NCBI GenBank assembly: GCA_020184695.1
Contig: JAANOX010000225.1
Span: 1-64,000, forward strand
DNA from: Histomonas meleagridis 2922-C6/04-290x
Taxonomy: Eukaryota > Protista > Parabasalia
Direction: 5' to 3'
Length of the DNA: 64,000 nt
Below are positions 1,048 through 64,000 of this stretch, piece after piece. Each line of letters begins with the position of its first letter. Position 1 is the stretch's first letter. The notes beneath the pieces are model-generated. The model saw only the letters and a list, made by a program, of their open reading frames with translations. It was not told the origin of the DNA and did no database searches. The position numbers and the translations under genes are program-made.

Positions 1048-1734
1048 GAGAGTCTGGGTAGCATACCCAAAACATACCCACTTTTGGACGGTTATTCCCA
1101 CAATTTTCGACTTTTTGAATTCGATGTAAAATAACCGTCTCATTTTTCCAAAATTTTGGATATTTCGAAAAATAAAGCTTAACAAAATAGAATAATTTTC
1201 AACAATAGTAAGAACTATATCAATATGATTATTCATGAATAGTATAGAATTAAATAATAATGAGTATTCGTGGAAAAAAACGATTTTGAAAATAATCATA
1301 AAATATTATAAAATAAATAGTATAATCGAATTCTCCATATGTTAAAACATATTACTGTATTCTTTTTTTGCCAAAATACAAAATGTATATTGTGTTATTA
1401 GCAAATGTTTTTGATGTCCATTATGCATTATTGAATTCATGTTCAAAAAAAGTGGGAATTGTGAAGAAATAATTTCATTCAATTTTAATTTCAATACAAA
1501 ATAATTTAAATGAATAATCAATAAATAAGAATAATTATATATATTAAGCATTGACAAACAATGAGCTACAAAATATATTTTTTAATAAGCATTAAATTAC
1601 AATAATTTATGAATAACATTATTTACAATCATTGATAAATAATGAATTATAATGATTATCATTAATTAAACATTAATATACAATGATTTATAATTATTTA
1701 TTTTACTAAACATTAATATACAATGATTTATAAT
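1048..1734 (+). repeat. Left terminal inverted repeat, including a private insert of about 180 bp (~1305-1483)
   Basis: Near-identical to the reverse complement of 5119-5687 apart from two private blocks. Confidence 0.9.
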
Positions 1735-2057
1735 TATTTATTTCATTAAATATTAATATACAATGATTTATAATTATTTATTTCATTAAATATTAATATA
1801 CAATGATTTATAATTATTTATTTCATTAGACATTCATATACAATGATTTATAATGATTATCATTAATTAAACATTCATATACAATGATTTATAATCATTT
1901 ATTTCATTAAACATTCATATACGATGATTTATAACGATTATCATTAATTAAACATTAATATACAATGATTTATAATGATTATCATTAATTAAACATTAAC
2001 ATACAATGATTTATAATCATTTCTTTCATTAAATATTAATATACAATGATTTATAAT
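1651..2057 (+). repeat. Subterminal tandem array of about 10 copies of a 40/41-bp unit (CATTAATATACAATGATTTATAAT...)
   Basis: Units start at 1671, 1711, 1751, 1791, 1831, 1872, 1912, 1953, 1994 and 2034. There are two tail variants. Confidence 0.9.
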
Positions 2058-2873
2058 TTCAATTAGGCAATGAAAGTTTTCAGATAAAATGTTAAGCAAT
2101 AAGCACATATTTATTGTCATAAAAATCAAAAACAAGCATTTAAAAAACAATCAATTAATATATCAATTTTTATTAAATATATAAATGAAATAATCAGACA
2201 ATTTTGTTAAAGCAATATGCTTAACATTCGAAATGCAATAAATTATGATGAAATTAATAAAATATTATCTATAATATGATAAACTTTTAATTATTTTATC
2301 AATAATCGATTCTTATATAAGAATCTTTTATGTGAATCAATAGACAACAACTTGTTGTAAACGAAAAAATATTGATCATCTAAAAAGCTATGAATCATTT
2401 TTTAATCTTACTATACTTCATAAAACAATAATTTATTATTTGATGAACATTTATAAGCAAATGAATATGATAACAATATTTGCTTTTCTACATAAAAGTT
2501 AATATTAAGGTGCAAGTTAAATATATAAAAGCCAATAATAGATAATGAGAACAAATAATAAATATTATAAATGCATTAAAATTATTCGTAAAACATCAAT
2601 AATCAATGAATTACATTATATGAATGAATAAAAGCAATAGTTTTTTGAGTATGTGCAAAATATTATAAGCACTTATATATCAAATAAATCATTGTTTAAT
2701 TTGAAAAAACAAATTAATTGAATAAATGTGCAACAATAAAGCAAATCATGAATTTGTGTTACGCATGATAATGCAATGAAATGAAAGTAAATTATAAATA
2801 TTCATTAATAATAATTGACTTTAATTTACCTTGCACTTCAATTAAATATATTATACTTTTTCTAATCTTTTAA

Positions 2874-4577
2874 TTAGTTGAATTTCATGTTCCATTTTTT
2901 TTCCAATTGCGACATATTTTCCCAACCACCTCTATCGAACAATTTCGTAATTATTTTATTTTTATCTTTTTTACTTGATTTCATATATTTTTTAACTATT
3001 GTCCATGGTATTCCATAATTTCTTTTCACTTTTCTGGCTCTAGTATTTATAGGTGTAAAACGACCCATTTTATTTTTAGAATAAAATGGTGGTGTTATTT
3101 TAATATTTCGAAATACTGACGAACTCAGCATTTCTTCAAAATTTGGGGTAACACCAAAATCATTTGTGTTTTCAAGTTCCATCGCTTTATTAAAATAAAA
3201 ATATTTGTTTCTCATATATTTAATTTGTTCAATAAACTCTAGACTTTCATTGTGAAATGGTTTTTCATAAAATTTTTTCGGAATAACTGAATTATCCCTA
3301 TCTCGATTAAGATATTTGTTTTTCTGCACATCCTCTAATGTTTGAATATGAACGAAAAATTCATGAAGAGAAGGTTTATATGTATTAATGTATCTATTCA
3401 TCGTCCTATTGAAGCTTTCGTTTCCATTATTGGTAGATCTTTCGAGCATTGGTTTCCCAGTCGTATTCCAAAGATCAATAGGATATATTGTTGAATATGT
3501 TTTCTGAAAATAGTCAATAAATTCATCAATTGACTTTTCCCCACATTTAAGTTTAGTCATAAAATCAATAAATTTTTTTGCTGAATTAATTTCAATATAT
3601 GGAAGGAGCTTGAGAATTTTCAACAGATCAATAAGAAATATATTTTGAGATCTCTTAAAATCGGATTTATGTTTTTTCAAAGTTTGAACATAATGAAAAT
3701 AGCATAGTTGCAAGCATGAATTATTGTGCGAAAATATTTTTTTGATCGAATTTATCATAGCTAATTCGAAGTCACAAACAAACTTAACATCTTGCTTGAT
3801 AGAATAACCACAGCTTTGCAAGTATGCATAATATAGACTAAATGCAAGATTATATGTTTCTTCCTTTTTGTTTGGTAGACATATATATAACAAAGGAATA
3901 TTCATAATCGGTGTTCTTCCAATAAAAGTAACTAATTGGTATGAATTTATTGGTGAAATTTTGAAAGTTCCATCAATACCGATCATTGAAGATTCTTGAA
4001 TTCTTTTTAACATGAAATCCGATGAAAACCCATAAATAACTTTATCAGCATTTATAGGTACTTCAAATAACAATAACCGATCTCCATTTAAAGTTTGTTT
4101 AAAATCAGTGTTCGATGTATATTGTCTGTTCAATTCTCCAACAAAGTTCTGTACTTTCCGCAGAGAAATGGAATTTTTGGTTTTGCCTATGAGCGTTTTC
4201 TTCTCGATCCAATTCAACAATTTATTGAAAATTAAAAATGGCATCCGATGATATTTGTTGTCATTGAACAATTCTATGATTTTTTTTTCGATGTCTTCTT
4301 TGCTCCAAAATGGTGAATCATTTTGTGTATTTTGATCGCAACTATGAATTCCATGAATAATATATGAATAAGACGATAAATCTGCAGAAAAATCACATGA
4401 AAGACGGCATTTGCAATAACCTGGCATGCTTCGATTGTTATGAATGCATCTATAAAAAGCTATTCGATGTTTTTTACTTCCGTTGCGCTCAAACTGATAT
4501 TTATAGTTGTTAATTTCGATCATATAGGGTATTCTACAATACATACCATCATAACGCCCAGGCCAACTCGCGATCAT
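2874..4577 (-). CDS. MULE (Mutator-family) DDE transposase, 567 aa
   Basis: IDGTFK (D1), VCDFE (D2), CYFH (CxxH) and TNNGNESFN (E) are all present, plus an N-terminal C..C..H.C WRKY/GCM/FLYWCH-like zinc finger. The ORF is uninterrupted. Confidence 0.93.
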   Translation of the reverse strand: MIASWPGRYDGMYCRIPYMIEINNYKYQFERNGSKKHRIAFYRCIHNNRSMPGYCKCRLSCDFSADLSSYSYIIHGIHSCDQNTQNDSPFWSKEDIEKKIIELFNDNKYHRMPFLIFNKLLNWIEKKTLIGKTKNSISLRKVQNFVGELNRQYTSNTDFKQTLNGDRLLLFEVPINADKVIYGFSSDFMLKRIQESSMIGIDGTFKISPINSYQLVTFIGRTPIMNIPLLYICLPNKKEETYNLAFSLYYAYLQSCGYSIKQDVKFVCDFELAMINSIKKIFSHNNSCLQLCYFHYVQTLKKHKSDFKRSQNIFLIDLLKILKLLPYIEINSAKKFIDFMTKLKCGEKSIDEFIDYFQKTYSTIYPIDLWNTTGKPMLERSTNNGNESFNRTMNRYINTYKPSLHEFFVHIQTLEDVQKNKYLNRDRDNSVIPKKFYEKPFHNESLEFIEQIKYMRNKYFYFNKAMELENTNDFGVTPNFEEMLSSSVFRNIKITPPFYSKNKMGRFTPINTRARKVKRNYGIPWTIVKKYMKSSKKDKNKIITKLFDRGGWENMSQLEKKWNMKFN

Positions 4578-5118
4578 TTTTTACAAATATGATGGCCAAA
4601 TATTTATTGAAAAAGTTGATTTCTTTTATTATTTCATCGACAATCATGTTTAACATGAAATCAACATATTTTGTAATTTGAATATCAAATTCATTGTTTA
4701 TCAAGGTCTACAGTTTGATATTATAGAAATTTATTGTATTTCACAATAAGAAAAATGTTTCATCATATTTTATTGTTTTTATAAGTTTAGCATATCATAA
4801 TATATAATATTATTGATGTTAAATAAAAATAATAATTCAATGTTGTTTAATAAGGAAATTTAACATATGGTTTATTGATATTCAATAAAAAATTTATAAT
4901 TTATGAATCACAAAATTATATGTGTTAGGTAATGTTTTAGAATTAAATTCAGGAAAAATTATTGTTACAAAAGATATAATTAACAAAATCATTGTAATTC
5001 AATGCTCGTTAATGTCATATAAAGATATTCATCAAAATTAATAAATGTTTGATAAATGAATATTTAAAGAACTAAATAATTAAAATTCATTGTTTGTTGA
5101 TATATAATGTAGAAAACC

Positions 5119-5687
5119 ATTATAAATCATTGTATATTAATGTTTAGTAAAATAAATAATTATAAATCATTGTATATTAATGTTTAATTAATGATAATCA
5201 TTATAATTCATTATTTATCAATGATTGTAAATAATGTTATTCATAAATTATTGTAATTTAATGCTTATTAAAAAATATATTTTGTAGCTCATTGTTTGTC
5301 AATGCTTAATATATATAATTATTCTTATTTATTGATTATTCATTTAAATTATTTTGTTTTACAATGTCATTTTTTATTTGTTCAGAATTTATTGCGGCAA
5401 AAATGTAAAGTATTGAAATTAAAATTTTATGATTATTTTCAAAATCGTTTTTTTCCACGAATACTCATTATTATTTAATTCTATACTATTCATGAATAAT
5501 CATATTGATATAGTTCTTACTATTGTTGAAATTATTCTATTTTGTTAAGCTTTATTTTTTCGAAATTTTTTTTATCCAAAATTTTGGAAAAATGAGACGG
5601 TTATTTTACATCGAATTCAAAAAGTCGAAAATTGTGGGAATAACCGTCCAAAAGTGGGTATGTTTTGGGTATGCTACCCAGACTCTC
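5119..5687 (-). repeat. Right terminal inverted repeat, including a private insert of about 54 bp (~5356-5409)
   Basis: Reverse complement of the left TIR. It carries only about 2 units of the 40-bp repeat. Confidence 0.9.
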
Positions 5688-12084: not shown

Positions 12085-14812
12085 TCAGTAAATGCTGCAT
12101 ATATCTTTTTTAACCCCATTTTGTTTAAGAAGTAATTTAACTATTTCTGTATGACCATTTCTAGATGCTTTTATAAGTGCTGTATGAAATAATTTAAATA
12201 ATTTCCAAATATTATTTTGAAATATAAAATTATTAAAATAGTTTTTAAAATAAACAAATAAACATCTCTAGCATTAATATCAATTCCTTTTTGTTCAAGA
12301 AGTAATTTAACTATTTCTATATCGTTATATTTAACTGCTAAATGAAGACATGTCCCAAATTATTATAAGAAATTTCAAGTAATAATAAGTAATTTCAAAT
12401 TATTTATTGAAACTTTAAACATATAAAAAAAATTTCAAATCATATAAATAAATATAAAATTAACAAAATATATACCATATTAGTAAAATGAATACCAAAT
12501 AAGCAAAATAAATACGAAATTTTATTATTGTACTCCAAATTATTAAAACAAATCATAAATTATTGAATGAAATTATAACTTATTAAAATGATCTAAAAAC
12601 AACAAAATTGAAGATATTTTGCATTAACATTAATTCCTTCATGTTGTAAAAGTACTTTTATTAAATCCATATTATTGATTTTTACGATATTTTGAATTCT
12701 TCCTTGATCATAATATATTGTTTCCATGTTGTTTTTTCGGATTAATGAATGAAGTATTGTTTCAAACACTTAAAATAAACTATAAATCATTAAAAAAGAT
12801 AATAAATTTTTAAAACAAATATAAAATTTTATAAATATATTGTAAAAATTTAGAAAAAATTCTAAACTATTACAACAAACATAAAATTAGTGAATAAAAT
12901 TCCTAATTATAGATACAAATATAAAAACATTAAAAAAGATTTCATATTATTATAAGAAATTTCAAGTTTTTATAGTAAATGCCAAATTATAAAAAGAAAC
13001 ATGTGTTGCATTTATATCAATTCCTTTGTGTTTTAAAAGTAACTGAAATATTTCAATGTTTTTTTCCAGTGCCATATGAAGTAGTGTTTCATTAAATGAT
13101 TTAATTAAACCATAGAAAAATAAAATAAACGCCAAATTGTCACAATAAATATAAAACAATATAATTCAATAGCAAAAAAATAAAATAAATTTCATAATAA
13201 ATAAATAAATAAATATAAGGTAATCAAAATGAATTTTTTTTATATTAACATCAATATCTTCACGTTGTAAGAGCAATTTTACTATTTCTATGTTATTGTT
13301 TTGAACTGCTAAATAAAGTGGTTTATGAAATTATTAAAATAAATATAAAATCATGAAAATGAACACCTGCATTAATATTAATTCCTTCTTGTTTTAAAAG
13401 TAATTTTACTATTTCTACATTATTGTTTTGAACTGCAAAAATAAGTGGTGATTTAAATTATCAAAACAAATTTTAAATTATGAAAGTATACTCGAATTTA
13501 TTAAAATATATATAAAATTATTATAATAAATACCAAATTATGAAAATATATAAGAATTTATTAGAACAAATATCAAAATTTTAAATAAAATACTTACAGC
13601 ATTAATATCTATTTCTTTTAGTTTTAAAGTATATTTGACGAGTTCGACATTTTCTGATATAGAAGAATATAATAATAATTTTTTAGGAATATAATTATTT
13701 TGTACAAAGTACATAACATGATATAAGTTACCCATTTTTGCTGACTCTTTAACAATATTATCATGAATCATCATTCCTTCTTTTTCTAGAAATCTAAAAA
13801 TTTCAAAATTCTGAGACAAAACACATATTCTACCTAAGTATTCATTATTATTAAAATCTTCAATTTTATTTTCATAAATATATTTAAAGATATCATTTTG
13901 ATGGAATTCAATTGCTGTTATATATGCATCTTCAAATGTTGAATGATTTTGTTCGCATAAATGAATAATTTCTTCATTTCCACCTGCAACTGCATATTTA
14001 CCTGTGTTTATTACATTTGCATTATTCATGAGTAAATATTTAAAACATTTAACTGATCCAAAAAATGCTGCATAATCAATTAATGAAACATTTTTTTTGT
14101 TAATAAATGAACATTTTTCATATAGTGATTTTTCAATTATTTGATCAAAATCAAAATCATTTTGTGATGATATTTCTTGAAGTTTTTCGAGATCATCATC
14201 TCGAATTATTTTTGTTATTTCATTTGGATTATGGCCTTCTTTAATTAACTTCTTATGAAGTTCCCAATCATTCTTTGATAATTCTTTATAATTCGCAATA
14301 AATGTTCTACTAAATGGATCTTTATGATAGGATGTGAACGTATTTTCTTCTTCTGTTTTATATTGTGCAAAATATTTTGATTGGATATTTTTAGTTACAC
14401 TTGAATCAATTAAATTTCGTTCAATCATTTTCTCGATTATATAAAGTTTTTCTTGTGATTTTGTTTTAAGTATATTCTTAACAAAAATATTAATGATTTT
14501 TAAAATGTTTTCATTAATTTCATTTTCTTTTTCTTGAATTGACTCTAAGTAATTTAAATATATATCAAAATCTTTTCGATGAGAACAAAATGCAGCATAA
14601 GTCAAATTACTTATAAGAAAATTAAATGATTCTGGAAAATAAAGATCGAATAATTTCATTGTTTGTTTAACAGAAATGTTAAAATTTGCTTCAATAATAT
14701 GAAAAATAATTTGATAAAGTTCCGAAAGTAATTCAATGTTGGTAGATTTATTTTTATCATGTTTGTGTTTTCTTTTTGAAGAACTTTCTGAGCTTTTGAT
14801 ATCTTCATTCAT
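12085..14812 (-). CDS. DUF3447 + ankyrin-repeat gene A, split by six 20-nt-module arrays (about 631 aa if the arrays are skipped)
   Basis: Coding blocks are 14812-13586, 13457-13359 (33 aa), 13330-13229 (34), 13096-12995 (34), 12766-12608 (53), 12359-12258 (34) and 12189-12085 (34 + stop). Each is stop-free and a multiple of 3. The DUF3447 core is LIDYAAFFGSVKCFKYL...AVAGGNEEIIHLCEQ. Confidence 0.8.
12190..12257 (-). repeat. Array A6: 68 nt = 8+3x20
   Basis: Lies between ...ARDVY and FHTAL. The 12-nt blocks read FKNY, FYIS, FGNY. Confidence 0.85.
12360..12607 (-). repeat. Array A5: 248 nt = 8+12x20
   Basis: ATTT-like starts recur every 20 nt from 12600 to 12360. It lies between ...AKYLQ and FGTCL. 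Confidence 0.9.
12767..12994 (-). repeat. Array A4: 228 nt = 8+11x20
   Basis: 20-nt phase holds from 12987 to 12767. It lies between ...ATHVS and FETIL. Confidence 0.9.
13097..13228 (-). repeat. Array A3: 132 nt = 8+6x20+4 (irregular)
   Basis: One spacer is extended by an extra 4-nt microsatellite copy, and the last block contains TAA. Confidence 0.7.
13331..13358 (-). repeat. Array A2: 28 nt = 8+1x20
   Basis: TTTCATGA-[TTT TAT ATT TAT]-TTTAATAA lies between ...AGVH and FHKPL. Confidence 0.85.
13458..13585 (-). repeat. Array A1: 128 nt = 8+6x20
   Basis: Blocks read FDIC, ILIY, FGIY, FYIY, IRVY, FKIC, with an internal 60-nt periodic similarity. Confidence 0.85.
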
Positions 14813-23499: not shown

Positions 23500-23540
23500 A
23501 AGTCACCATTTTTTATTCTTCTTTTTTGTAGTTAACAAAC

Positions 23541-23708
23541 AAATTACTTCTTGAACAAGAAGGAATTGATATTAATGCTAAAGATATTTATTTGGTTAAT
23601 TTAATATTTATTTTATTAATTTGAATTTTCAAAATAATATAAATTATTTGATACAACAAGAAGGGAATAAGGCGTTTTGAAACCCCACTCATCGATGAAG
23701 AGCTTTAA
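23541..23708 (+). pseudogene. Orphan ankyrin fragment carrying a 20-nt-module array
   Basis: KLLLEQEGIDINAKDIY | spacer | FNIY | spacer | FEFS | AAATAATA | damaged FGNY block ... FETPLI. Confidence 0.7.
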
Positions 23709-30012: not shown

Positions 30013-33000
30013 ATGGCAGAAGGATTTGATTATCACCTAAGTCCAAAAGAACAAGAAAAAGTTGAAAGAATCGTACCAGTCAATCAATCAAAGATATTTT
30101 TAGCATTTCATGCAGATATTATATTAAATGAAAAAAAATTCAAAGAGGGTACATGTGTTCTTACAACACATCTAATTATTTTATGCAAGCGTACCTTTAT
30201 TGGGAATGGCCTCTCTGAAATTAAGACATTTCATATTTTAAGACTAGAGAAATTTGCTATGATTAAAGAAAACATATGCAAATTTATTATTAATAATGCT
30301 AAAGTGACCATAATTTCACAGGCGGCTTTACGTTTTGCTAGAGTTTTAAACAGGAATTACTATGTAATAACAACACTTTTTCCTCCAAATAAAAAGGTAA
30401 AATTCAAAACAAAGAACAAATCAGATTTTCCTCCATTTGACCCGCACATGTCACCATCACAAAAGTTACAGTTTTGCTATAATGCTTATTGTTCATTTTA
30501 CAAATGTTTATATATTCATGATATTCCACGTTTTTTCCATTCTTTAATTTTCAGCGGCAATGGAATAGCAAACTTAGACCAGCTTCCTACCTATCTTATT
30601 GATCTTAAATTCAGTTCAAATCTTGATCTAAGACCAGTTTTTAATTCATTAATTTTTTATCCATTGATTTATGGCATTTGCTGTTATGACGTAGATAGGT
30701 ACGACATCGTGAAGTCAATGTCTCCATTGATTACATATACCAAATATCTTCAACTTATTGATATTCATAATTGCCAAGTTGAAGTTGGAATAAACGAACT
30801 AGCAGAAGCTCTGACCAAAAACCCTGAAAACAAAATTGTTTATTGGGATCTAAGTAACAATCCATTCAAAAACATCACTCCATTTTGCAAAGCATTATCT
30901 TTAGCAACAGCACCAATTTTTTACCTAAACTTGTCAACAACACAGCTCACAACAGAGTCAACCATTGAGTTATTTAACTCGATTTTGAATAATAAGAATT
31001 TATGGGGAATCAAATATCTATTTATTGATGGTGCTATCTTTTCAGAAGAAAGCTTACTAGCGTTATCAAAACTAATAAGCACATTCGCTCAAGAAAAAAT
31101 TCGTTCATTACACACTTTGAGCATTGCAAATATCAAAGGTCAAATCGAAACGGTTATAAACGTATTTAACCGTTGGCCTCAGCCGATTTCATCGTTCAAT
31201 GTATCCAACAACGAACTTAACCAAAAGGCAATTTCAGAGCTTAATAAGTTCGTGAAAGGATCTGAATCATTAAAGGATCTGGATATAAGTTCTACAAATC
31301 TTAGCTCAGATGATATTACTGATATAATCAATGGAATTTCAGAAAATCAAAAAATAACTGAAATGAAATTGAATTTAGCAAAACTTGAATTAACTGGGAA
31401 GAAAATAAGAGATGTTATGAATGCATTTGAAAATTCAACATTAACAAAATGGACAGGAATTTCAATTGAATCTAATGATGTACAAATGGAAGAGCTTGGA
31501 AAGTTCATTAGTGTTGCAAGGAGAATGACAAACTTGAGAAGTCTCTCACTTGGTGATAATTTCACATATAAAACCAAAGGAATTGAAGAAGCTCTTTTAC
31601 AAATCCTTTCACTTAATTCGCTTAGGTTATTAAGCATTAGGGGAACAGAAAAAAGATTTCTTGGAGATAAATTATACAGGTTTTTGAAAGCAATGAAAAT
31701 AAATACAACACTTCTAAAGCTCGATATTTCAGGGAACAAGATCAAAGACACAGGCATGGATCTAGTTTGCGATGTTTTACGTTCGAACAAAATGCTTACA
31801 GAGCTTAATATTGATGGATCATGTCCAAAGAATCAAAAAACCCTTCTTAAATTCTTTGAAACTCTTTCCTCAAATACATACATTGTTGAGTGTGCATTTC
31901 CATATGAAGATTTTTCGACACTTCTTAGTTCAATTTCGTCAAATTCCCAAATGCAGTCTTTCTTTGACCAATTTTCTAAAATCCAAAAGTCATCCCAAGA
32001 AGCCATTCAAAAGAATCAAATGGAAGTTGGCGCACATTCATATCTCTCCGAGAAGAAGCTCCCAGAGTTGGACGAACTGATTGACAACATCACGATAAAC
32101 GTTCACCAAAAACTTGAGAACACAAAATTCAATCAACACGCGGCTATTTCATCGGTTTTTGGGCTGCCCCTACCGCATTTAGATCCCTCTGATGACCAGA
32201 CCAAAGGTGCCATAATTGACCTGAAGCAACCACAATCTATTGATGAATATGAATTGAAGAACACAAACGTTATGGTAGTTGAGGATATTAGTATGTTAGA
32301 AACGCCATTAGGATTAAAGACACTTCAATATAACTCATTATGTATTCGAAGGTCAATTCATGTCGAGCCAAAGATTGACGTGAACAAACTCGACCCAACA
32401 GAAGAAGAAATTTATCGAAACGCGCGAAAACTTGGAATACCACCAATTTTATTACAAGGAAATATGAATATGTCTTCGTTAGGAATACAGTCATTGGCGA
32501 AGAGCAACGACGTTGAAAAGAACCCAAAAAGAAAGAAAAGAATTACAAAGAAAGTTGTATCGAAAAAGAAGAAAGTTGTTACAAGGAAGAAAATAAGAAG
32601 GAAAAACAATGAAACAAATAACGTAGAACAATGCGAAGACAGCTTGGCTATGAGCGAATCAGATGAAGAAGAAAGTGAGGAAGAGAGCGAAGAAGAAACA
32701 AGCCAAAATGAAAGCAATAGCTTAAAGGTGGAGGAAACAAGCGAAAAAGAAAAGAGCAATAGCTTAGAGGTAGAAGAAACGAGCAAAGAAGAAAAGAGCA
32801 ATAGCTTAGAGGTAGAAGAAAGGAGCAATAGCTTAGAGGTTGAAGAGACGAGCGAAGAAGAAAGGAGCAATAGCTTAGAGGTTGAAGAGACGAGTAAAGA
32901 AGAAAGGAGCAATAGCTTAGAGGTGGAGGAAACAAGTGAAACAACAAAGGAGTCGAGGAAAAGTGACAGCGAAACGAACACAACAAAAAGTGACGACAAA

Positions 33001-33312
33001 ACAGATAAAAGTGACGCTCAGAGTTCAACCAGGAAAAGTGACAGTGGAACGGATAAAAGTGACAATGAAAGCAAAACGTACAAAAGTGACACACAAAGCT
33101 CAACTGAAGATAGTGAAAATGAAAGCAGTTCCACAAAAAGTGATAGCGAAAGCAAAACAGAAAGAACCGAAAGTTATTCAAGAAGTGATACATCAAGCAA
33201 AAGCGAAGATGAGACAAGTGATAATAGTGCAAGTGATAGCGAACAATCGAATGAAGAAGAAACCAGCAGCAGTCGAAGTCGTGAATATTACACAAATAGC
33301 GACAGCACATAG
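30013..33312 (+). CDS. CARMIL-like PH + RNI-type LRR protein with a long acidic low-complexity tail
   Basis: PH-like N-terminus and LRRs (YWDLSNN, LKDLDISST, LLKLDISGN, LTELNIDG), then a basic stretch and an S/E/D/K-rich tail. First ATG is at 30013. Confidence 0.75.
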   Translation: MAEGFDYHLSPKEQEKVERIVPVNQSKIFLAFHADIILNEKKFKEGTCVLTTHLIILCKRTFIGNGLSEIKTFHILRLEKFAMIKENICKFIINNAKVTIISQAALRFARVLNRNYYVITTLFPPNKKVKFKTKNKSDFPPFDPHMSPSQKLQFCYNAYCSFYKCLYIHDIPRFFHSLIFSGNGIANLDQLPTYLIDLKFSSNLDLRPVFNSLIFYPLIYGICCYDVDRYDIVKSMSPLITYTKYLQLIDIHNCQVEVGINELAEALTKNPENKIVYWDLSNNPFKNITPFCKALSLATAPIFYLNLSTTQLTTESTIELFNSILNNKNLWGIKYLFIDGAIFSEESLLALSKLISTFAQEKIRSLHTLSIANIKGQIETVINVFNRWPQPISSFNVSNNELNQKAISELNKFVKGSESLKDLDISSTNLSSDDITDIINGISENQKITEMKLNLAKLELTGKKIRDVMNAFENSTLTKWTGISIESNDVQMEELGKFISVARRMTNLRSLSLGDNFTYKTKGIEEALLQILSLNSLRLLSIRGTEKRFLGDKLYRFLKAMKINTTLLKLDISGNKIKDTGMDLVCDVLRSNKMLTELNIDGSCPKNQKTLLKFFETLSSNTYIVECAFPYEDFSTLLSSISSNSQMQSFFDQFSKIQKSSQEAIQKNQMEVGAHSYLSEKKLPELDELIDNITINVHQKLENTKFNQHAAISSVFGLPLPHLDPSDDQTKGAIIDLKQPQSIDEYELKNTNVMVVEDISMLETPLGLKTLQYNSLCIRRSIHVEPKIDVNKLDPTEEEIYRNARKLGIPPILLQGNMNMSSLGIQSLAKSNDVEKNPKRKKRITKKVVSKKKKVVTRKKIRRKNNETNNVEQCEDSLAMSESDEEESEEESEEETSQNESNSLKVEETSEKEKSNSLEVEETSKEEKSNSLEVEERSNSLEVEETSEEERSNSLEVEETSKEERSNSLEVEETSETTKESRKSDSETNTTKSDDKTDKSDAQSSTRKSDSGTDKSDNESKTYKSDTQSSTEDSENESSSTKSDSESKTERTESYSRSDTSSKSEDETSDNSASDSEQSNEEETSSSRSREYYTNSDST
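32713..32940 (+). repeat. Coding tandem repeat: six copies of SNSL(E/K)VEE(TSxEEx), 42-nt unit with one 27-nt copy
   Basis: AGCAATAGCTTA starts at 32713, 32755, 32797, 32824, 32866 and 32908. Confidence 0.9.
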
Positions 33313-35220: not shown

Positions 35221-37067
35221 ATGAAACAAAACGAAAGAATAATGGGAGATTACAGTCAAAATGAATTAGAAACACTGTTGTTAATTGAGCAAATGTTTTC
35301 TGACTTGTGTAAAGAAAATATTAAGCAAAAAGCAAAATCAGTTATGGATAAGCTTGATAGTGATTATCCATTATCTTCTATCATGAATATTGTACAAATA
35401 GTTTATACTTTATTTGTTATTAGACAACTTGACTTTTCTGAATTTATCAATTTTCTTAAAGAAATTGAAATAATAGAAGAAAATAACAAATTCAATATTA
35501 ATAATATATTTAATATATTCTCACATTTTATTATCAAAGAATATACCCAAGAATCATATTATCTTATTGAAAATATGATTGAAGAAAAACTCCTTGAATC
35601 AAAACTTATTAAAAATATACAAAATTCATATTTTGCACATTATATGACTGAAAAACAAATTAAAGAAAAGCATTTTTTGAGATTTATGAAGAAAATCATT
35701 GAAAATTATGAAGAATTATCAAAGAATGATTGGGAACTTCATAAGAAGTTAATTAAAGAAGGAGTTAATCCGAATGAACTTGCGATAATAATTCGAAATG
35801 ATGATATAGAAAAACTTCAAGAAATATCATCACAAACAAAATTTGATTATAATCAAACAATTGAACCATCACTTTATGAAAGATGTGACTTTATTAATAA
35901 AGATAATGTTACATTAATTGATTATGCAGCATTTTTTGGGTCAATAAAATGTTTTAAATATTTACTTATGAATGAAGCAAATATCGAAGAAACAGGTAAA
36001 TATGCAGTTGCAGGTGGAAATGAAGAAATTATTCATTTATGTGAACAAAATCATTCAACATTTGAAGATGCATATGAAACAGCAATAGATTTTCATCGAA
36101 ATGATATCTTTAAATATCTTTATGAAAATAAAATTGTTGAAAACTATAATTTAGAAGAACTTGGAAAAAAATGTGTTTCACATTATAATTACAAAATTTT
36201 ATCTTTTTTAATTAAAGAAGGAATGAAAATTAATGTGAATATTATTGATGAATCGGCAAGAATTGGAAATATTTTCCTTATCAAATATTTTCATAAAGAC
36301 AATCAACTCCCATTAGATATTTTAATTTCTTCTTCAATATCAGGAAATATTGAACTTGTAAAATATATTCTTGATCAAAAAGATATTAACATAAATGCTA
36401 ATGATATTAATTTGTTTTATTTTATGTTTGTGCCAATAATTTAATGTTTTAAGATAATATTTGGAAATTATTCAAAAGATTTTGGACGGCACTTATGTAT
36501 GCTTCAAAATATGGATATAATGAAATAGCTAAATTACTTATTCAGCAAGAAGGAATTGATATTAATGCTCAAAATATTTATTTTTGTTAGTTATTGTTGA
36601 TTAAAATAATTTAATGTTTCAGAATAATTTTTGGAAATTATTTAAAAGATTTAGAAATTCACTTATGTTTGCATCTCAAAACGGCCATACAGAGATTACA
36701 AAGTTGCTTCTTGAACAAAATATAAATTATATCAATGTTAAAGATATTTTTTTATTTTGTTTTGTATTTGTTTTGATGATTTTATCCTGTTTCAAAGAAT
36801 TTTTTGGAATTTATTAAAAATATTTAATACAGCACTCATTTATGCAGCTGAAAATGGAAATACTGATATAGTTCGAATTATACTTTTGCAAAAAGGAATT
36901 GATATCAATATTAAAAACATTTATTTGTAAAAAATCGAGTTTATTTCATTATTTTTTGGTTTCAAAATTATTTTTGGAAATTATTAAAATTATTTTTTAC
37001 AGCACTTTATTATGCAACTAAAAATGACCACAATGAAATCGTGAATTTACTTCTTGGACAAAAATGA
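35221..37067 (+). CDS. DUF3447 + ankyrin-repeat gene B, split by four 68/71-nt module arrays (about 523 aa if the arrays are skipped)
   Basis: Coding blocks are 35221-36411, 36480-36581, 36650-36751, 36823-36924 (each of the last three 102 nt = one 34-aa ankyrin repeat) and 36993-37067. Its core is highly similar to gene A. Confidence 0.82.
36412..36479 (+). repeat. Array B1: 68 nt
   Basis: ATTT at 36419, 36439, 36459 and 36479. Blocks read FYVC, FNVL, FGNY. Confidence 0.85.
36582..36649 (+). repeat. Array B2: 68 nt
   Basis: Blocks read VIVD, FNVS, FGNY. A hairpin AATAATTT-TTGG-AAATTATT lies at 36623-36642. Confidence 0.85.
36752..36822 (+). repeat. Array B3: 71 nt (68 + one codon)
   Basis: Blocks read FCIC, FYPVS (15 nt), FGIY. 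Confidence 0.85.
36925..36992 (+). repeat. Array B4: 68 nt
   Basis: Blocks read NRVY, FLVS, FGNY. Confidence 0.85.
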
Positions 37068-48381: not shown

Positions 48382-48673
48382 CTACTTGTGACACTAGAAA
48401 AAATAGTATCAAATTTAAACCCAGAAAACATTAAATTTTCGGTTGAACAAACGATAAAAATGTTCAATGAAAATAATTAATATTTTTTCAATTCAACAAC
48501 ATTGTTTTTAAAATTTATTTTGAATATTTAATAAAATTTCATAATAACATTTGGAAATTATTCAAATTATTTCACACATCACTTACAATAGCAATTAAAT
48601 AAGAAATACAGAAATTGCTAAATTACTTATTCAAATTGATGAAACAAATGTTAATATAAAACTTTTTTATTAA
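48382..48673 (+). pseudogene. Deleted and decayed DUF3447-ankyrin paralog with a module array
   Basis: LLVTLEKIVSNLNPENIKFSVEQTIKMF matches the family N-terminus. It is followed by blocks FKIY, FNKIS (15 nt), FGNY, then FHTSLTIA and a frameshifted ankyrin tail. Confidence 0.7.
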
Positions 48674-60658: not shown

Positions 60659-63600
60659 TTATAACAATTTTTGTTTTCTTCCCATTATTGCATCATATTC
60701 CGTCGGACTTAAACTATTATATAAAACATTTTGATCAAAATCTTCTCCTAAAATTAATGATATTAAATTCTGATTTACATTTTGTAACTCATCGATTTGT
60801 ATTTGTAACTGATCAATTCTTTCGCTCATTGTCAATTGTATTTTTCCTGATTTTTCCTTATATTCATTTGATCTTTTCTTCATTTCATCATGATCATTCT
60901 TTAAGTCGGAAAGTATTTCAGTGAATTCCGAAAGTTTTTGATTCGAATTATTTAATGTTTCTTGAATGAATTGTAATGCTTCGTTAACATCAGACCCGTC
61001 ATATCCTATAAGCGATGCTTGTCGCATTATAAACTCAATCGATTTCCGATCTTTTCCGGCGTTAGTAATAATTTTCGTGATAGTAGCAATAATCCGATCA
61101 AGAAATGAATTGGAAAATGGTAAAATGACGTCGCGATCACGAATGCCCAAATGTAATGACGAAAGAACTTGTTTGAATTGTGTTTCGATGATTTTGTTGT
61201 TATTTTCGAATTTGGATATTTGTGATTGTAATTCTTTTTGTGTTGTTTCAAGTGTTTCGATTTGATGCTTTAAGTCTTTATTAAGTGTTTCGAGTTGTTT
61301 AACTTGTTGCGTAAGTTTTGCGTTGTTTGTTTCTAAATTTGTTATTTGTTGCTGTAACTTTTTGTTGTTTGTTTCTAAGTCTTTATTTTGATGCTTTAAT
61401 TCTTTGTTGTTGGATTCGAGTTTGGCAATGCGCTGTTTCATCTCGGATTTGGTATTTTTGAGATTTGATATTTGTTGTTGCAAATCTTTGTTGTCTGATT
61501 CAAGTGCACTGACTTTTTGCTCGAATTCTTTTTTATTGGTTTCAAGTGCATTGACTTTTTGTTTCATTTCGTTGTTAATTGATTCGAGATCTGAAATTTG
61601 TTTCTTCATTTCATCATTTTCTGATTTAAGTTCATTGACTTTTTGCTCTAATTCTTTGTTATTTGATTTGAGGTCTTTGATTTGATTCTTCATTTTATCT
61701 TTTTCTGTTTCAAGTTCATTGACTTTTTGTTCCAATTCTGTGTTATTAAATTCGAGTTCATTGATTTGATGTTTCTTTTCGTCATTATTTGCTTCAAGTT
61801 CTTTGATTTGTTTTGATAATTCTTTGTTATTCGACTTAAGATTTTCGATTTGTTTCTTCATTTCTTTGTTTTCTGTTTCAAGTTCGTCGATCTGCTTCTT
61901 CATTTCATTGTTGTTTGCTTCAAGTTCTTCTTTATTCGACGCAAGTTCATTCACTTTTTGTTCTAATTCTTTGTTCTTTGATTCAAGTTCATTGATTTGT
62001 TTTGCAAATTCTTTGTTATTCGTCTTAAGATCTTCGATTTGTTTCTTCATTTCTTTGTTTTCTGTTTCAAGTTCGTCGATCTGCTTCTTCATTTCATTGT
62101 TGTTTGCTTCAAGTTCTTCTTTATTCGACGCAAGTTCATTCACTTTTTGTTCTAATTCTTTGTTCTTTGATTCAAGTTCTTTGATTTGTTTCTTCATTTC
62201 GTTGTTGTTTGCTTTAAGTTCTTCATTTTGATTCTTCACTTCATTATTTACTGTTTCGAGTTTATTATTTCTTTGTTCTAAATCTTTAATATTTGCTTCG
62301 AATTCGTTGATTTGTTGTTTCATTTCGTTATTATTTGCATCGAGATTTTTGTTTTGCTGTTCCAATTCTTTGTTATTTGATTTAAGTTCTTTAATTTGTT
62401 TCTTCATTTCGTTGTTATCTGCTTCGAGATTTTCATTTTGTTGTTCTAACTCATTGATATTGGATTTAAGATCTTTAATCTGTTTCTTTAATTTGTTATT
62501 ATTTGTTTCGAGATTTTCGATTTCTTTCTTCATTTCATTATCATCTAATTCGAACTCTTGAATTTGTTCATTTAATTCATTATTTTCCATCTCGAGGTTT
62601 TTGATTTGTTTTTCTAATTCTTTGTTGTTTGCTTCAAGTTCTTTAACTTTTTGTTCTAATTCTTTATTAGTTAAATTAAGTTCTTCAATTTGTTTTTCCA
62701 AATTTTCTATATTTGCTTCGAGATTTTCAATTTGTTTTTTCATTACTTTATTATTTGTTTCAAGTTCATTAATATGTTTATCTTTTTCATCTTCATTTAA
62801 TTCGAGATCTTCTATTCGTTTTTTCATTTCATCATTTTTCCCTTCAAGTTCTTCAATTTGTTGTTTCAACTCTTTGTTATTTATTTCGAGATTTTCCTTT
62901 TCTTTTTCCAATTCTTTATTATTAGTTATAAGATTTTCATTTTGTTGTTTCAATTCGTCATTATTCGTTTCAAGTTTATTAATATGTTTATCTTTTTCAT
63001 CTTCATTTAATTCGAGATCTTCAATTCGCTTCTTCATTTCATCATTTTTCCCTTTAAGTTCTTCAATTTGTTGTTTCAGTTCTTTATTATTTAATTCGAG
63101 ATTTTCCTTTTCTTTTTCCAATTCTTTATTATTTGATTGAAGTTCATTGATTTGTTCCACTAATTCATTGTCATTTAATTCGAGATTTTTGTTTTGTTTT
63201 TCTAATTCGTTTTTCTTTGCTTCAAGTTCTTTTATTTGCTTTTTCATTTCATTATTACTTTGTTCAATTTCTTCGTTTTGTTTTTCCATTTCTTTGTTAT
63301 CTTCTACGAGTTCTTTAATGCGCTGTTTTAATTCTTCGTTATTTGCTTGAAGATTTTCATTTTGTTGTTCCAATTCATTGTTATTTGTTTCAAGTTTTGT
63401 AATTTGTTGCTTCATTTCGTTATTATTTGTTTCCAAATTTTCATTTTGTTTTTCCAATTCTTTGTTATTTTCTTCTAATTCTTTTATTTGTTGTTTCAAT
63501 TCGTTATTATTATTTAATATGTTTTCATTTTGTTTTTCTAATTCATTGTTATTGGCTTCAAGTTTCTTTAATTGCTGCTTTATTTCTTCGTTATTTGCTT

Positions 63601-64000
63601 GAAGATTTTCATTTTGTTGTTCTAAATTGTTATTATTTATTTGAAGTTTTGATATTTGTTGTTTTAATTCATTATTATTTGTTTCTAATTCTTCGTTATT
63701 TGATTGAAGATTTTCTTTTTGTTGGTCCAATGCTTTGTTCTTTTCTTTAAGTTCTCTTATTTGTTGCTTTAGTTCGTTATTATTTATTTCTAATTCTTCG
63801 TTACTAACTTCAAATTCGTCATCAAGTTTCTTTAATTCTTTATTAATTGATTCAAGGTTTTCAATTTGTTGTTTCATATTTTTATTATCTGCTTCTAATT
63901 CATTAATTTGTTGTTTCATTTCATTGTTATCTTTCTCGATATTTTCAATCTGTTGTTCGAGTTCTTTATTATTTGATTCGAGATTTTCTTTTTCTTTTTC
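60659..64000 (-). CDS. Long heptad coiled-coil ('viral A-type inclusion'-like) protein, 5' end beyond the window
   Basis: The frame stays open to base 64000, with E/N/K/Q-rich heptad repeats and near-exact internal duplications of 189 and 210 nt. Confidence 0.85.
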   Translation of the reverse strand, partial: EKEKENLESNNKELEQQIENIEKDNNEMKQQINELEADNKNMKQQIENLESINKELKKLDDEFEVSNEELEINNNELKQQIRELKEKNKALDQQKENLQSNNEELETNNNELKQQISKLQINNNNLEQQNENLQANNEEIKQQLKKLEANNNELEKQNENILNNNNELKQQIKELEENNKELEKQNENLETNNNEMKQQITKLETNNNELEQQNENLQANNEELKQRIKELVEDNKEMEKQNEEIEQSNNEMKKQIKELEAKKNELEKQNKNLELNDNELVEQINELQSNNKELEKEKENLELNNKELKQQIEELKGKNDEMKKRIEDLELNEDEKDKHINKLETNNDELKQQNENLITNNKELEKEKENLEINNKELKQQIEELEGKNDEMKKRIEDLELNEDEKDKHINELETNNKVMKKQIENLEANIENLEKQIEELNLTNKELEQKVKELEANNKELEKQIKNLEMENNELNEQIQEFELDDNEMKKEIENLETNNNKLKKQIKDLKSNINELEQQNENLEADNNEMKKQIKELKSNNKELEQQNKNLDANNNEMKQQINEFEANIKDLEQRNNKLETVNNEVKNQNEELKANNNEMKKQIKELESKNKELEQKVNELASNKEELEANNNEMKKQIDELETENKEMKKQIEDLKTNNKEFAKQINELESKNKELEQKVNELASNKEELEANNNEMKKQIDELETENKEMKKQIENLKSNNKELSKQIKELEANNDEKKHQINELEFNNTELEQKVNELETEKDKMKNQIKDLKSNNKELEQKVNELKSENDEMKKQISDLESINNEMKQKVNALETNKKEFEQKVSALESDNKDLQQQISNLKNTKSEMKQRIAKLESNNKELKHQNKDLETNNKKLQQQITNLETNNAKLTQQVKQLETLNKDLKHQIETLETTQKELQSQISKFENNNKIIETQFKQVLSSLHLGIRDRDVILPFSNSFLDRIIATITKIITNAGKDRKSIEFIMRQASLIGYDGSDVNEALQFIQETLNNSNQKLSEFTEILSDLKNDHDEMKKRSNEYKEKSGKIQLTMSERIDQLQIQIDELQNVNQNLISLILGEDFDQNVLYNSLSPTEYDAIMGRKQKLL

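Follow-up and report, generated by a model that had tools for sequence, protein, structure and literature searches.

Arrays of 17-nucleotide units parted by single codons in ankyrin-repeat genes of Histomonas meleagridis, and their probable removal from the transcript

How is an ankyrin-repeat gene read when its repeats are parted by T-rich, frame-breaking inserts? The question is raised by a stretch of 64,000 nucleotides (nt) from the poultry parasite Histomonas meleagridis (contig JAANOX010000225.1; hereafter the window), in which two paralogous genes, here called gene A (12085..14812, minus strand) and gene B (~35242..37067, plus strand), carry six and four such inserts, respectively. The original prediction, made from the sequence, gave these inserts lengths of 128, 28, 132, 228, 248 and 68 nt in gene A and 68, 68, 71 and 68 nt in gene B, and proposed that at each junction one insert is lost or skipped whole; all ten lengths are reproduced with its boundaries. 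Our analysis points to a different anatomy, in which an insert is not one piece but is made up of 2-13 pieces of 17 nt, neighbouring pieces being parted by one codon that is kept. We consider it probable, with good confidence, that the transcript loses the 17-mers but keeps the single codons, so that the inserts are sets of very short introns arranged in tandem.

Both genes encode parabasalid DUF3447/ankyrin-repeat proteins: their N-terminal parts match PF11929 (DUF3447) at 31.7 bits (gene A exon 1) and 37.0 bits, the curated cut-off being 26.9, and the blocks between the inserts are ankyrin repeats, as had been claimed, with 30-aa exons matching Pfam PF00023 at E values of 2.5e-10 and 3.5e-8. 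The closest named relative of gene A is itself a protein of H. meleagridis. The G+C content of the window, 19-36%, is in line with the 28% published for the genome (PMC8529796). Gene A, as delimited from its open reading frames, the Pfam matches and a Viterbi decoder, runs from an ATG at 14812 to a natural stop codon, TGA, at 12087-12085, and consists of seven exons and six arrays with ~44 units of 17 nt, whereas the four arrays of gene B hold 16 units.

The 17-nt unit, its 20-nt module and the ankyrin linker

The repeating element of the arrays is a 20-nt module, in which a T-rich 17-nt unit is followed by one codon. The unit consensus, RTTTNTTTTAATAATTT, compiled from 54 units, can be written R-T-T-T-N-T-T-T-T/A-A/T-A-T-A/T-A-T-T-T: 53 of the 54 begin with a purine (37 with A), and 53 have T at position 17, mostly as part of a terminal TTT. 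All ten arrays tile as 17+3 modules, with every unit placed at a codon boundary (phase 0). The quantisation of the inserts, which had been given as 8+20n, is thus real in its lengths but not in its offset: 12 nt of each array, two pseudo-codons per side, had been assigned to the flanking blocks, so that the boundaries lay 6 nt too far in on each side; the full array is 12 nt longer and measures 20(n+1) nt, a plain multiple of 20.

A Viterbi decoder that was allowed nothing except sense codons and 17-nt units passes from exon 1 of gene A to the natural stop through 44 units, and likewise reaches the stop of gene B through 16. When the unit length was left free between 13 and 24 nt, 17 nt accounted for 78 of 132 called units and the next class for 11; this free-length version overcalls units in ordinary coding sequence and serves for the length distribution only. 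Across the 64-kb window, matches to a profile of the unit are spaced at 20 nt 27 times and at 40 nt nine times, no other spacing occurring more than six times, and chains of units are restricted to genes A and B and two ankyrin relics; this pattern lies well outside what chance would give. The G+C content is 31% in the codon slots versus ~10% within the units. No stop codon is seen in the codon slot, where ~5.8 would be expected from the base composition of the slot (p ~0.002), which is weak evidence when taken alone, since several other phases are stop-free too.

The prediction that the inserts are devoid of the GT...AG signals of trichomonad introns holds for the individual units. None of the 54 ends in AG, 16 start with GT and 31 with AT, and CTAA occurs inside only four, most of them carrying instead TAAT(A)A at positions 9-14; the units fail as trichomonad introns on the 5' GT, the 3' AG and the ACTAA/TCTAA branch motif alike. 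A search of the same 54 units for U12-type ends recovered no ATATCC start and no AC end, and a loose search for canonical trichomonad introns yielded chance-like matches only. At the DNA level the arrays are minisatellites, that is, head-to-tail repeats of a 10-100-nt unit: Tandem Repeats Finder (TRF) detects period-20 arrays inside the inserts of gene A at 12446-12521, 12537-12588, 12770-12835, 12939-12999 and 13475-13563 (68-78% matches), and additionally periods of 40 and 60 in the array closest to the N-terminus (A1).

Excision of the 17-mers, and of nothing else, restores the ankyrin linker D-x-x-G-x-T-A-L. Array A6 of gene A (12184..12263; four modules spanning 80 nt, 68 in the original prediction; codons K Y G H, i.e. 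AAA TAT GGA CAT), once relieved of its four 17-mers, reads DINARD-KYGH-TALIK, complete with the conserved ankyrin Gly, rather than the junction peptide proposed earlier, DINARDVYFHTALIK; the junction peptides predicted by the decode are of the DINARDKYGHTALIK type. The four arrays of gene B, all on the plus strand and with four units each, decode in the same way: B1 (36406..36485; codons Y N G W), B2 (36576..36655; I N G R) and B4 (36919..36998; R L G F) are each 80 nt long where 68 had been given, and B3 (36746..36828; C YP G N), with 83 nt for an earlier 71, departs from the multiple of 20 in that one of its micro-exons has 6 nt and two codons (TAT CCT). The resulting linkers are ND-YNGW-TAL, QN-INGR-NSL, KD-C-YP-G-N-TAL and KN-RLGF-TAL, and the third codon is GGA in five of the five four-unit arrays of both genes. 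The 30-aa exons span positions 4-32 of the 33 in the PF00023 profile, and therefore the four missing profile positions are the four single codons; Gly is, as we take it, the consensus residue at profile position 2, which would equal the third of these codons. In a four-unit array the kept codons would thereby supply the hairpin-loop residues x-x-G-x between ...IN-x-D and T-A-L-.... A BLASTP comparison of three splice models of gene B with distant uninterrupted homologues does not separate the micro-exon model from that of the original prediction, because both give a linker of equal length.

The same 17+3 design is found in homologues from gut metagenomes in ENA, which are genomic contigs and not cDNA. 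One of them (L006) has six consecutive four-unit arrays with 24 units that stay in frame to the contig end, Gly being third in five of the six; another (L001) decodes as NAKNK-Y-G-K-TALMFA, and two more (L002, L004) are alike in design. Across these loci the length of 17 nt and the Gly codon are conserved, whereas the other codons and the sequences of the units drift, which is the pattern expected if the single codons are translated. A scan of metagenomes of the Joint Genome Institute found a single, unrelated locus of 38% G+C without units, whose adjoining open reading frame was read as SecA-like from its translation. Two further ENA contigs with a paralogous ankyrin gene, L007 (4622-4723) and L008 (4380-4481), have a DDE_Tnp_IS1595-type transposase gene at the end.

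A small, conserved inverted repeat, AATAATTT - GGA - AAATTATT, brackets the Gly codon in every four-unit array (12203-12225, 36446-36472, 36616-36642 and 36959-36985), with one arm at the 3' end of the third unit and the other at the 5' start of the fourth. It is thermodynamically weak; the hairpin AAUAAUUU-GGA-AAUUAUU that recurs around this codon is also weak, and in RNA folding the arrays did not surpass shuffled sequences (z = +0.39, +0.85, +1.02 and -0.89).

Transcripts across the arrays

RNA and DNA were compared by means of three RNA runs (X5, X6 and X7) and one DNA run, all in the form of assembled Logan contigs, the DNA data possibly coming from the assembly's own sample. In the RNA runs the intergenic depth is near zero, consistent with genuine RNA libraries. 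DNA contigs are colinear with the window over the arrays (e.g. gap-free over 12295-13397), and the DNA runs contain 0.92-0.95 of the sampled words overall.

The features of gene A are here followed in the direction of transcription on the minus strand. Exon 1 (13592..14812) is an uninterrupted block of 407 codons that ends in ...DINAVS, and RNA contigs (records 11, 18 and 26) follow it down to 13592 before diverging; therefore the GTAAGT at this point is coding (V-S) and no splice site. It is followed by array A1 (13452..13591; seven modules, codons D L G Y R K K, 140 nt for an earlier 128), the ankyrin repeat of exon 2 (13365..13451), array A2 (13325..13364; two modules, codons Y H, 40 nt for 28) and the ankyrin repeat of exon 3 (13235..13324), in which the RNA matches end at 13236 (records 10, 18 and 26). 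Two RNA contigs of 489 nt (X6 record 18 and X7 record 26) span 13877..13236, i.e. 642 genomic nt; the difference of 153 nt equals 9x17, as expected if seven units of A1 and two of A2 are removed with all nine codons kept. A match of another contig (X5 record 10) begins at 13328, which is the position expected if the preceding kept codon ends in T (TAT).

Beyond the irregular array A3, which is treated below, lie the ankyrin repeat of exon 4 (13001..13090), array A4 (12761..13000; 12 modules, codons G E E Y G Y R T Y I I E, 240 nt for 228) and the long ankyrin-like block of exon 5 (12614..12760). RNA pieces match exactly over 13000-13093 and, in X5, X6 and X7 alike, over 12614-12763. X5 record 10 joins exons 4 and 5 through 33 letters (11 codons) versus 237 genomic nt, so that 204 nt, or 12x17, are gone. 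Arrays A1, A2 and A4 are accordingly fully processed in RNA contigs. The next array, A5 (12354..12613; 13 modules, codons L I M G R G G Y E K E E G, 260 nt for 248), shows a single 17-nt deletion in X5 record 9, at 12597-12613, that is exactly its first unit, and in X6 record 16 the 66 unplaced letters equal its 13 codons plus 27 nt of the ankyrin repeat of exon 6 (12264..12353, the exon with the PF00023 match at 2.5e-10). Position 12327 is the common end point of the spliced A5 contig (X6) and of the unspliced contigs, with a GGG codon plus 27 nt as 30 shared letters, a number that we take to be k-1 for a presumed Logan k of 31; the last 3' boundary of A5 therefore falls between 12357 and 12356. 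Altogether the match ends at 13592, 13328, 13093, 13000, 12763 and 12614 coincide with the decode at single-base precision, with one-base extensions occurring where a kept codon and a unit happen to share a letter, and the RNA contigs have zero mismatches to the exons of gene A over 93-286 nt on either side of the gaps. A protein search with the unique 50-aa exon 5, aimed at RNA contigs, gave no match.

At A6, which separates exon 6 from the last exon with the stop codon (12085..12183), joints between 12183 and 12264 that skip the 80 nt of the array are found in 13 RNA contigs and in no contig of the DNA run; 12 letters lie between the two sides in the one example with printed letters. Loose RNA ends past the ...GAT at 12264 continue AAT AAT GGA AAA ACA GCA CTT (D|NNGK|TAL), and several RNA joints carry x-x-G-x codons between those same flanks. 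Loose ends of the DNA run at the adjacent position 12269 enter T-rich units, none being listed for that run at 12264 itself. For the array region of gene B, the sampled words are present at 0.95 in DNA runs and at 0.22-0.24 in RNA runs, where ~0.31 would be expected from the exons only; this is weak but consistent support for removal of the units from RNA.

Several points weigh against the reading of the inserts as arrays of introns. The label "RNA" of the runs is a type guessed by the tool. The evidence specific to gene A consists of contig arithmetic and of the alignment ends of assembled contigs, not raw reads, with the letters of the micro-exons unread, and the letter-level evidence on the linker comes from paralogous transcripts, which could conceivably derive from uninterrupted paralogs. 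According to a warning of the tool, the count of joints in the DNA run is incomplete. Loops of 11-13 residues, as decoded for A4 and A5, are unusual for ankyrin repeats, and we know of no spliceosome with a TT 3' end or with 3-nt exons between 17-nt introns. Moreover, processing is incomplete: one contig, with a depth of 361 versus 529 for its spliced neighbour, retains A5 beyond the first unit. Finally, the sole RNA contig that bridges A3 (X5 record 10) keeps eight letters versus the 21 predicted and is out of frame.

Array A3 (13091..13234; 144 nt for an earlier 132) is composed of six 17-nt units and a remainder that is either one unit of 21 nt including an (ATTT)n slip or 24 nt of read-through; the (ATTT)n stretch has four extra bases, and TRF reports (AATA)5 at 13196-13215. 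The bridging contig removes 136 nt where the decode predicts 123, again a multiple of 17 (8x17), over 13094-13236 (minus strand), with the cut following 13236, one base before the in-frame site. Tilings by eight units of 17 nt, or by skipping micro-exons, give more than one solution with the right count, none of which is singled out. A message across A3 meets a stop ~20 codons downstream, and unspliced pieces of A3, A4 and A5 are present in all RNA runs, some of them identical to the window. Gene A may thus be partly defective downstream of A3, with its distal repeats on the way to decay.

Mode of removal and rival explanations

The original prediction had left three routes for the removal of the inserts, namely non-canonical splicing, ribosomal bypassing and DNA excision. 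The absence of the units from RNA contigs and their presence in DNA contigs speak for non-canonical removal at the RNA level, and against the other two. As to how this is achieved, our leading interpretation, which we hold at about an even chance and by analogy only, is that the unit itself is recognised in a spliceosomal reaction of strongly derived type. Here RTTT would act as the 5' site, TAAT(A)A at ~4-8 nt from the 3' end as the branch region, and TTT would replace AG, with the fixed length of the unit reflecting minimal intron size.

The main alternative, possible though clearly less probable, is a dedicated non-spliceosomal excision, in which an endonuclease-ligase or a guide-RNA pathway would measure off the 17 nt. 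It would account for units without GT-AG ends, for the very strict unit length and for the removal of multiples of 17 even at the aberrant A3; in addition, 3-nt exons are ill-suited to the footprint of a spliceosome. On the other side, the arrays show no significant predicted structure of the kind used in tRNA-type or IRE1-type splicing, the 5' RT, the T-tract and the TAAT(A)A near the 3' end resemble the type B introns of Trichomonas vaginalis (PMC12316389), and no candidate enzyme or guide has been identified. In more general terms, we tentatively suggest that the units could be substrates of a novel excision system, either non-spliceosomal or a spliceosome with no need for GT/AG, that measures 17 nt. 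Every 20-nt module then being worth one codon, the binding loops of ankyrin repeats could be lengthened or shortened, and perhaps varied through the alternative use of single-codon exons. If so, such excision would be a built-in means of diversification for a large family of surface-binding proteins of the parasite.

A quite improbable explanation takes the downstream parts of the genes as dead tails, i.e. minisatellites in decaying ankyrin pseudogenes, with the spliced contigs being uninterrupted paralogs or assembly artefacts. The period-20 repeats found by TRF, the retention and the out-of-frame product in gene A, the relics with stops within the window and the many paralogous contigs aligned at 90% likeness would all fit it. 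Yet it does not explain why RNA contigs free of mismatches to gene A are short by exact multiples of 17 nt, nor why the DNA run has the arrays and none of the joints that skip 80 nt; moreover, the RNA runs that yield the spliced contigs also yield unspliced ones with the very sequence of the window, and the Gly codon and the 17-nt length are conserved over independent loci.

Still less probable is the single-piece model of the original prediction, in which one insert of 8+20n nt is lost per junction to give a reading like D-V-Y-F-H-T-A-L. It reproduces the lengths and positions of the inserts, and its linker has the same length as that of the micro-exon model. Nevertheless, it predicts no extra letters where the RNA keeps 33 in A4 and 12 in the 80-nt arrays, and the joints at 12264/12183 are off its boundaries; the RNA after D reads N-N-G-K and not the T-rich first codons of the array, and the model provides no Gly at the conserved Pfam position. 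Least credible of all is a ribosomal bypass of arrays kept in the mRNA, or an excision from the DNA of expressing cells: unspliced RNA contigs do exist, but unit-free contigs occur in all three RNA runs, and the DNA runs retain nearly all sampled words in contigs colinear with the window.

If the units are spliced out, the duplication of a module would add one intron plus one codon, such that replication slippage would alter the loop by whole residues with the frame intact. The repeats of period 20, 40 and 60 suggest growth by whole 20-nt modules, and module duplication would explain the arrays of 7, 12 and 13 units in gene A. If confirmed, it would represent a simple route to changes of loop length in repeat proteins.

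Known systems and other features of the window

In Trichomonas vaginalis, for which ~63 introns in all have been confirmed, type B introns are 23-25 nt long and begin with GT and end with AG, their branch motif, (T/A)CTAA, being fused to the 3' end (PMC12316389). The units of the present arrays share with them the parabasalid host, very short length, T-richness, a branch-like motif near the 3' end and removal from the mRNA. They differ in their RT...TT ends, their 17 nt, the rarity of CTAA and their occurrence in rows of up to 13 with 3-nt exons. Among the minimal introns cited in that source are those of Stentor coeruleus (15 nt) and Bigelowiella natans (18 nt) (PMC12316389). The extreme shortness and very narrow length distribution of such introns are comparable to those of the units, whereas their ends are canonical GT-AG, they are scattered in normal exons, they form no single-codon arrays and they are not confined to one protein motif. 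The short introns of B. natans belong to its nucleomorph and range over 18-21 nt.

With regard to the exons, the micro-exons of animals and plants (3-27 nt, often in surface loops) offer a parallel in that exons down to one codon are spliced into the mRNA. They have long canonical flanking introns and need enhancer proteins; the difference here is that several follow in succession at 20-nt spacing. Unconventional splicing, of which the tRNA-type bulge-helix-bulge introns and the IRE1-cut HAC1/XBP1 intron are examples (PMC5435141), likewise releases short non-GT-AG pieces from RNA without spliceosomal signals. These introns require defined stem-loops, whereas no significant structure is predicted in the arrays, and a transcript has one of them and not a series. 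Translational bypass elements, as in gene 60 of phage T4 and the mitochondrial byps of Magnusiomyces, are also short frame-breaking inserts in intact genes. They stay in the mRNA, whereas the 17-nt units are missing from RNA contigs. The arrays further resemble coding minisatellites as period-20 tandem repeats that change by whole units, with the distinction that 20 is not a multiple of 3, only the removal of 17 nt making each unit worth one codon.

The paper on the H. meleagridis genome describes introns as scarce, with at most one per gene, and leaves ankyrin genes unmentioned (PMC8529796); work on trichomonad introns deals only with GT-AG introns of at least 23 nt (PMC12316389). We found no description of this layout in the literature on introns or ankyrin genes of Histomonas and on ultrashort or non-canonical introns of parabasalids, in agreement with what the original prediction had supposed, and tandem 17-nt units with single-codon exons appear to be unpublished. 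If confirmed, the units would be among the shortest introns known and, for a parabasalid, the first large class whose ends are not of the GT-AG type, and their single codons the first tandem one-codon exons, which would challenge ideas on the minimal splicing substrate. The published annotation of H. meleagridis would in that case miss or truncate part of the ankyrin gene family (cf. PMC8529796). To this picture the locus contributes the expanded arrays of 7, 12 and 13 units, and two natural failures, namely the faulty processing of an array with a 4-nt slip and the frequent retention of another.

The two ankyrin relics of the window, both on the plus strand and located by chains of unit-profile matches, are an ankyrin repeat followed by two 17+3 modules (23540..23625) and a degenerate fragment of an ankyrin gene with modules and in-frame stops (48490..48640). 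They retain 2-4 modules, which accompany ankyrin repeats even in dead copies.

The remaining repeats of the window are of other kinds. A Mutator-like (MULE) DNA transposon occupies 1200-5528 and has an open reading frame of 567 aa (2874-4577, minus strand) with a match to PF10551; its long terminal inverted repeats (1200-1308/5420-5528, 99%, and 1488-1800/5053-5365, 94%) contain 40/81-nt tandem repeats that have no relation to the 17+3 modules. At 32550-33100 lies a coding tandem repeat, rich in purines, whose periods are 27, 42, 69 and 111 nt and whose G+C content is the highest of the window, and a long 42-nt (14-codon) tandem array with higher-order periods of 84-189 nt at 61300-63700 looks like coding sequence of the coiled-coil type on the minus strand.

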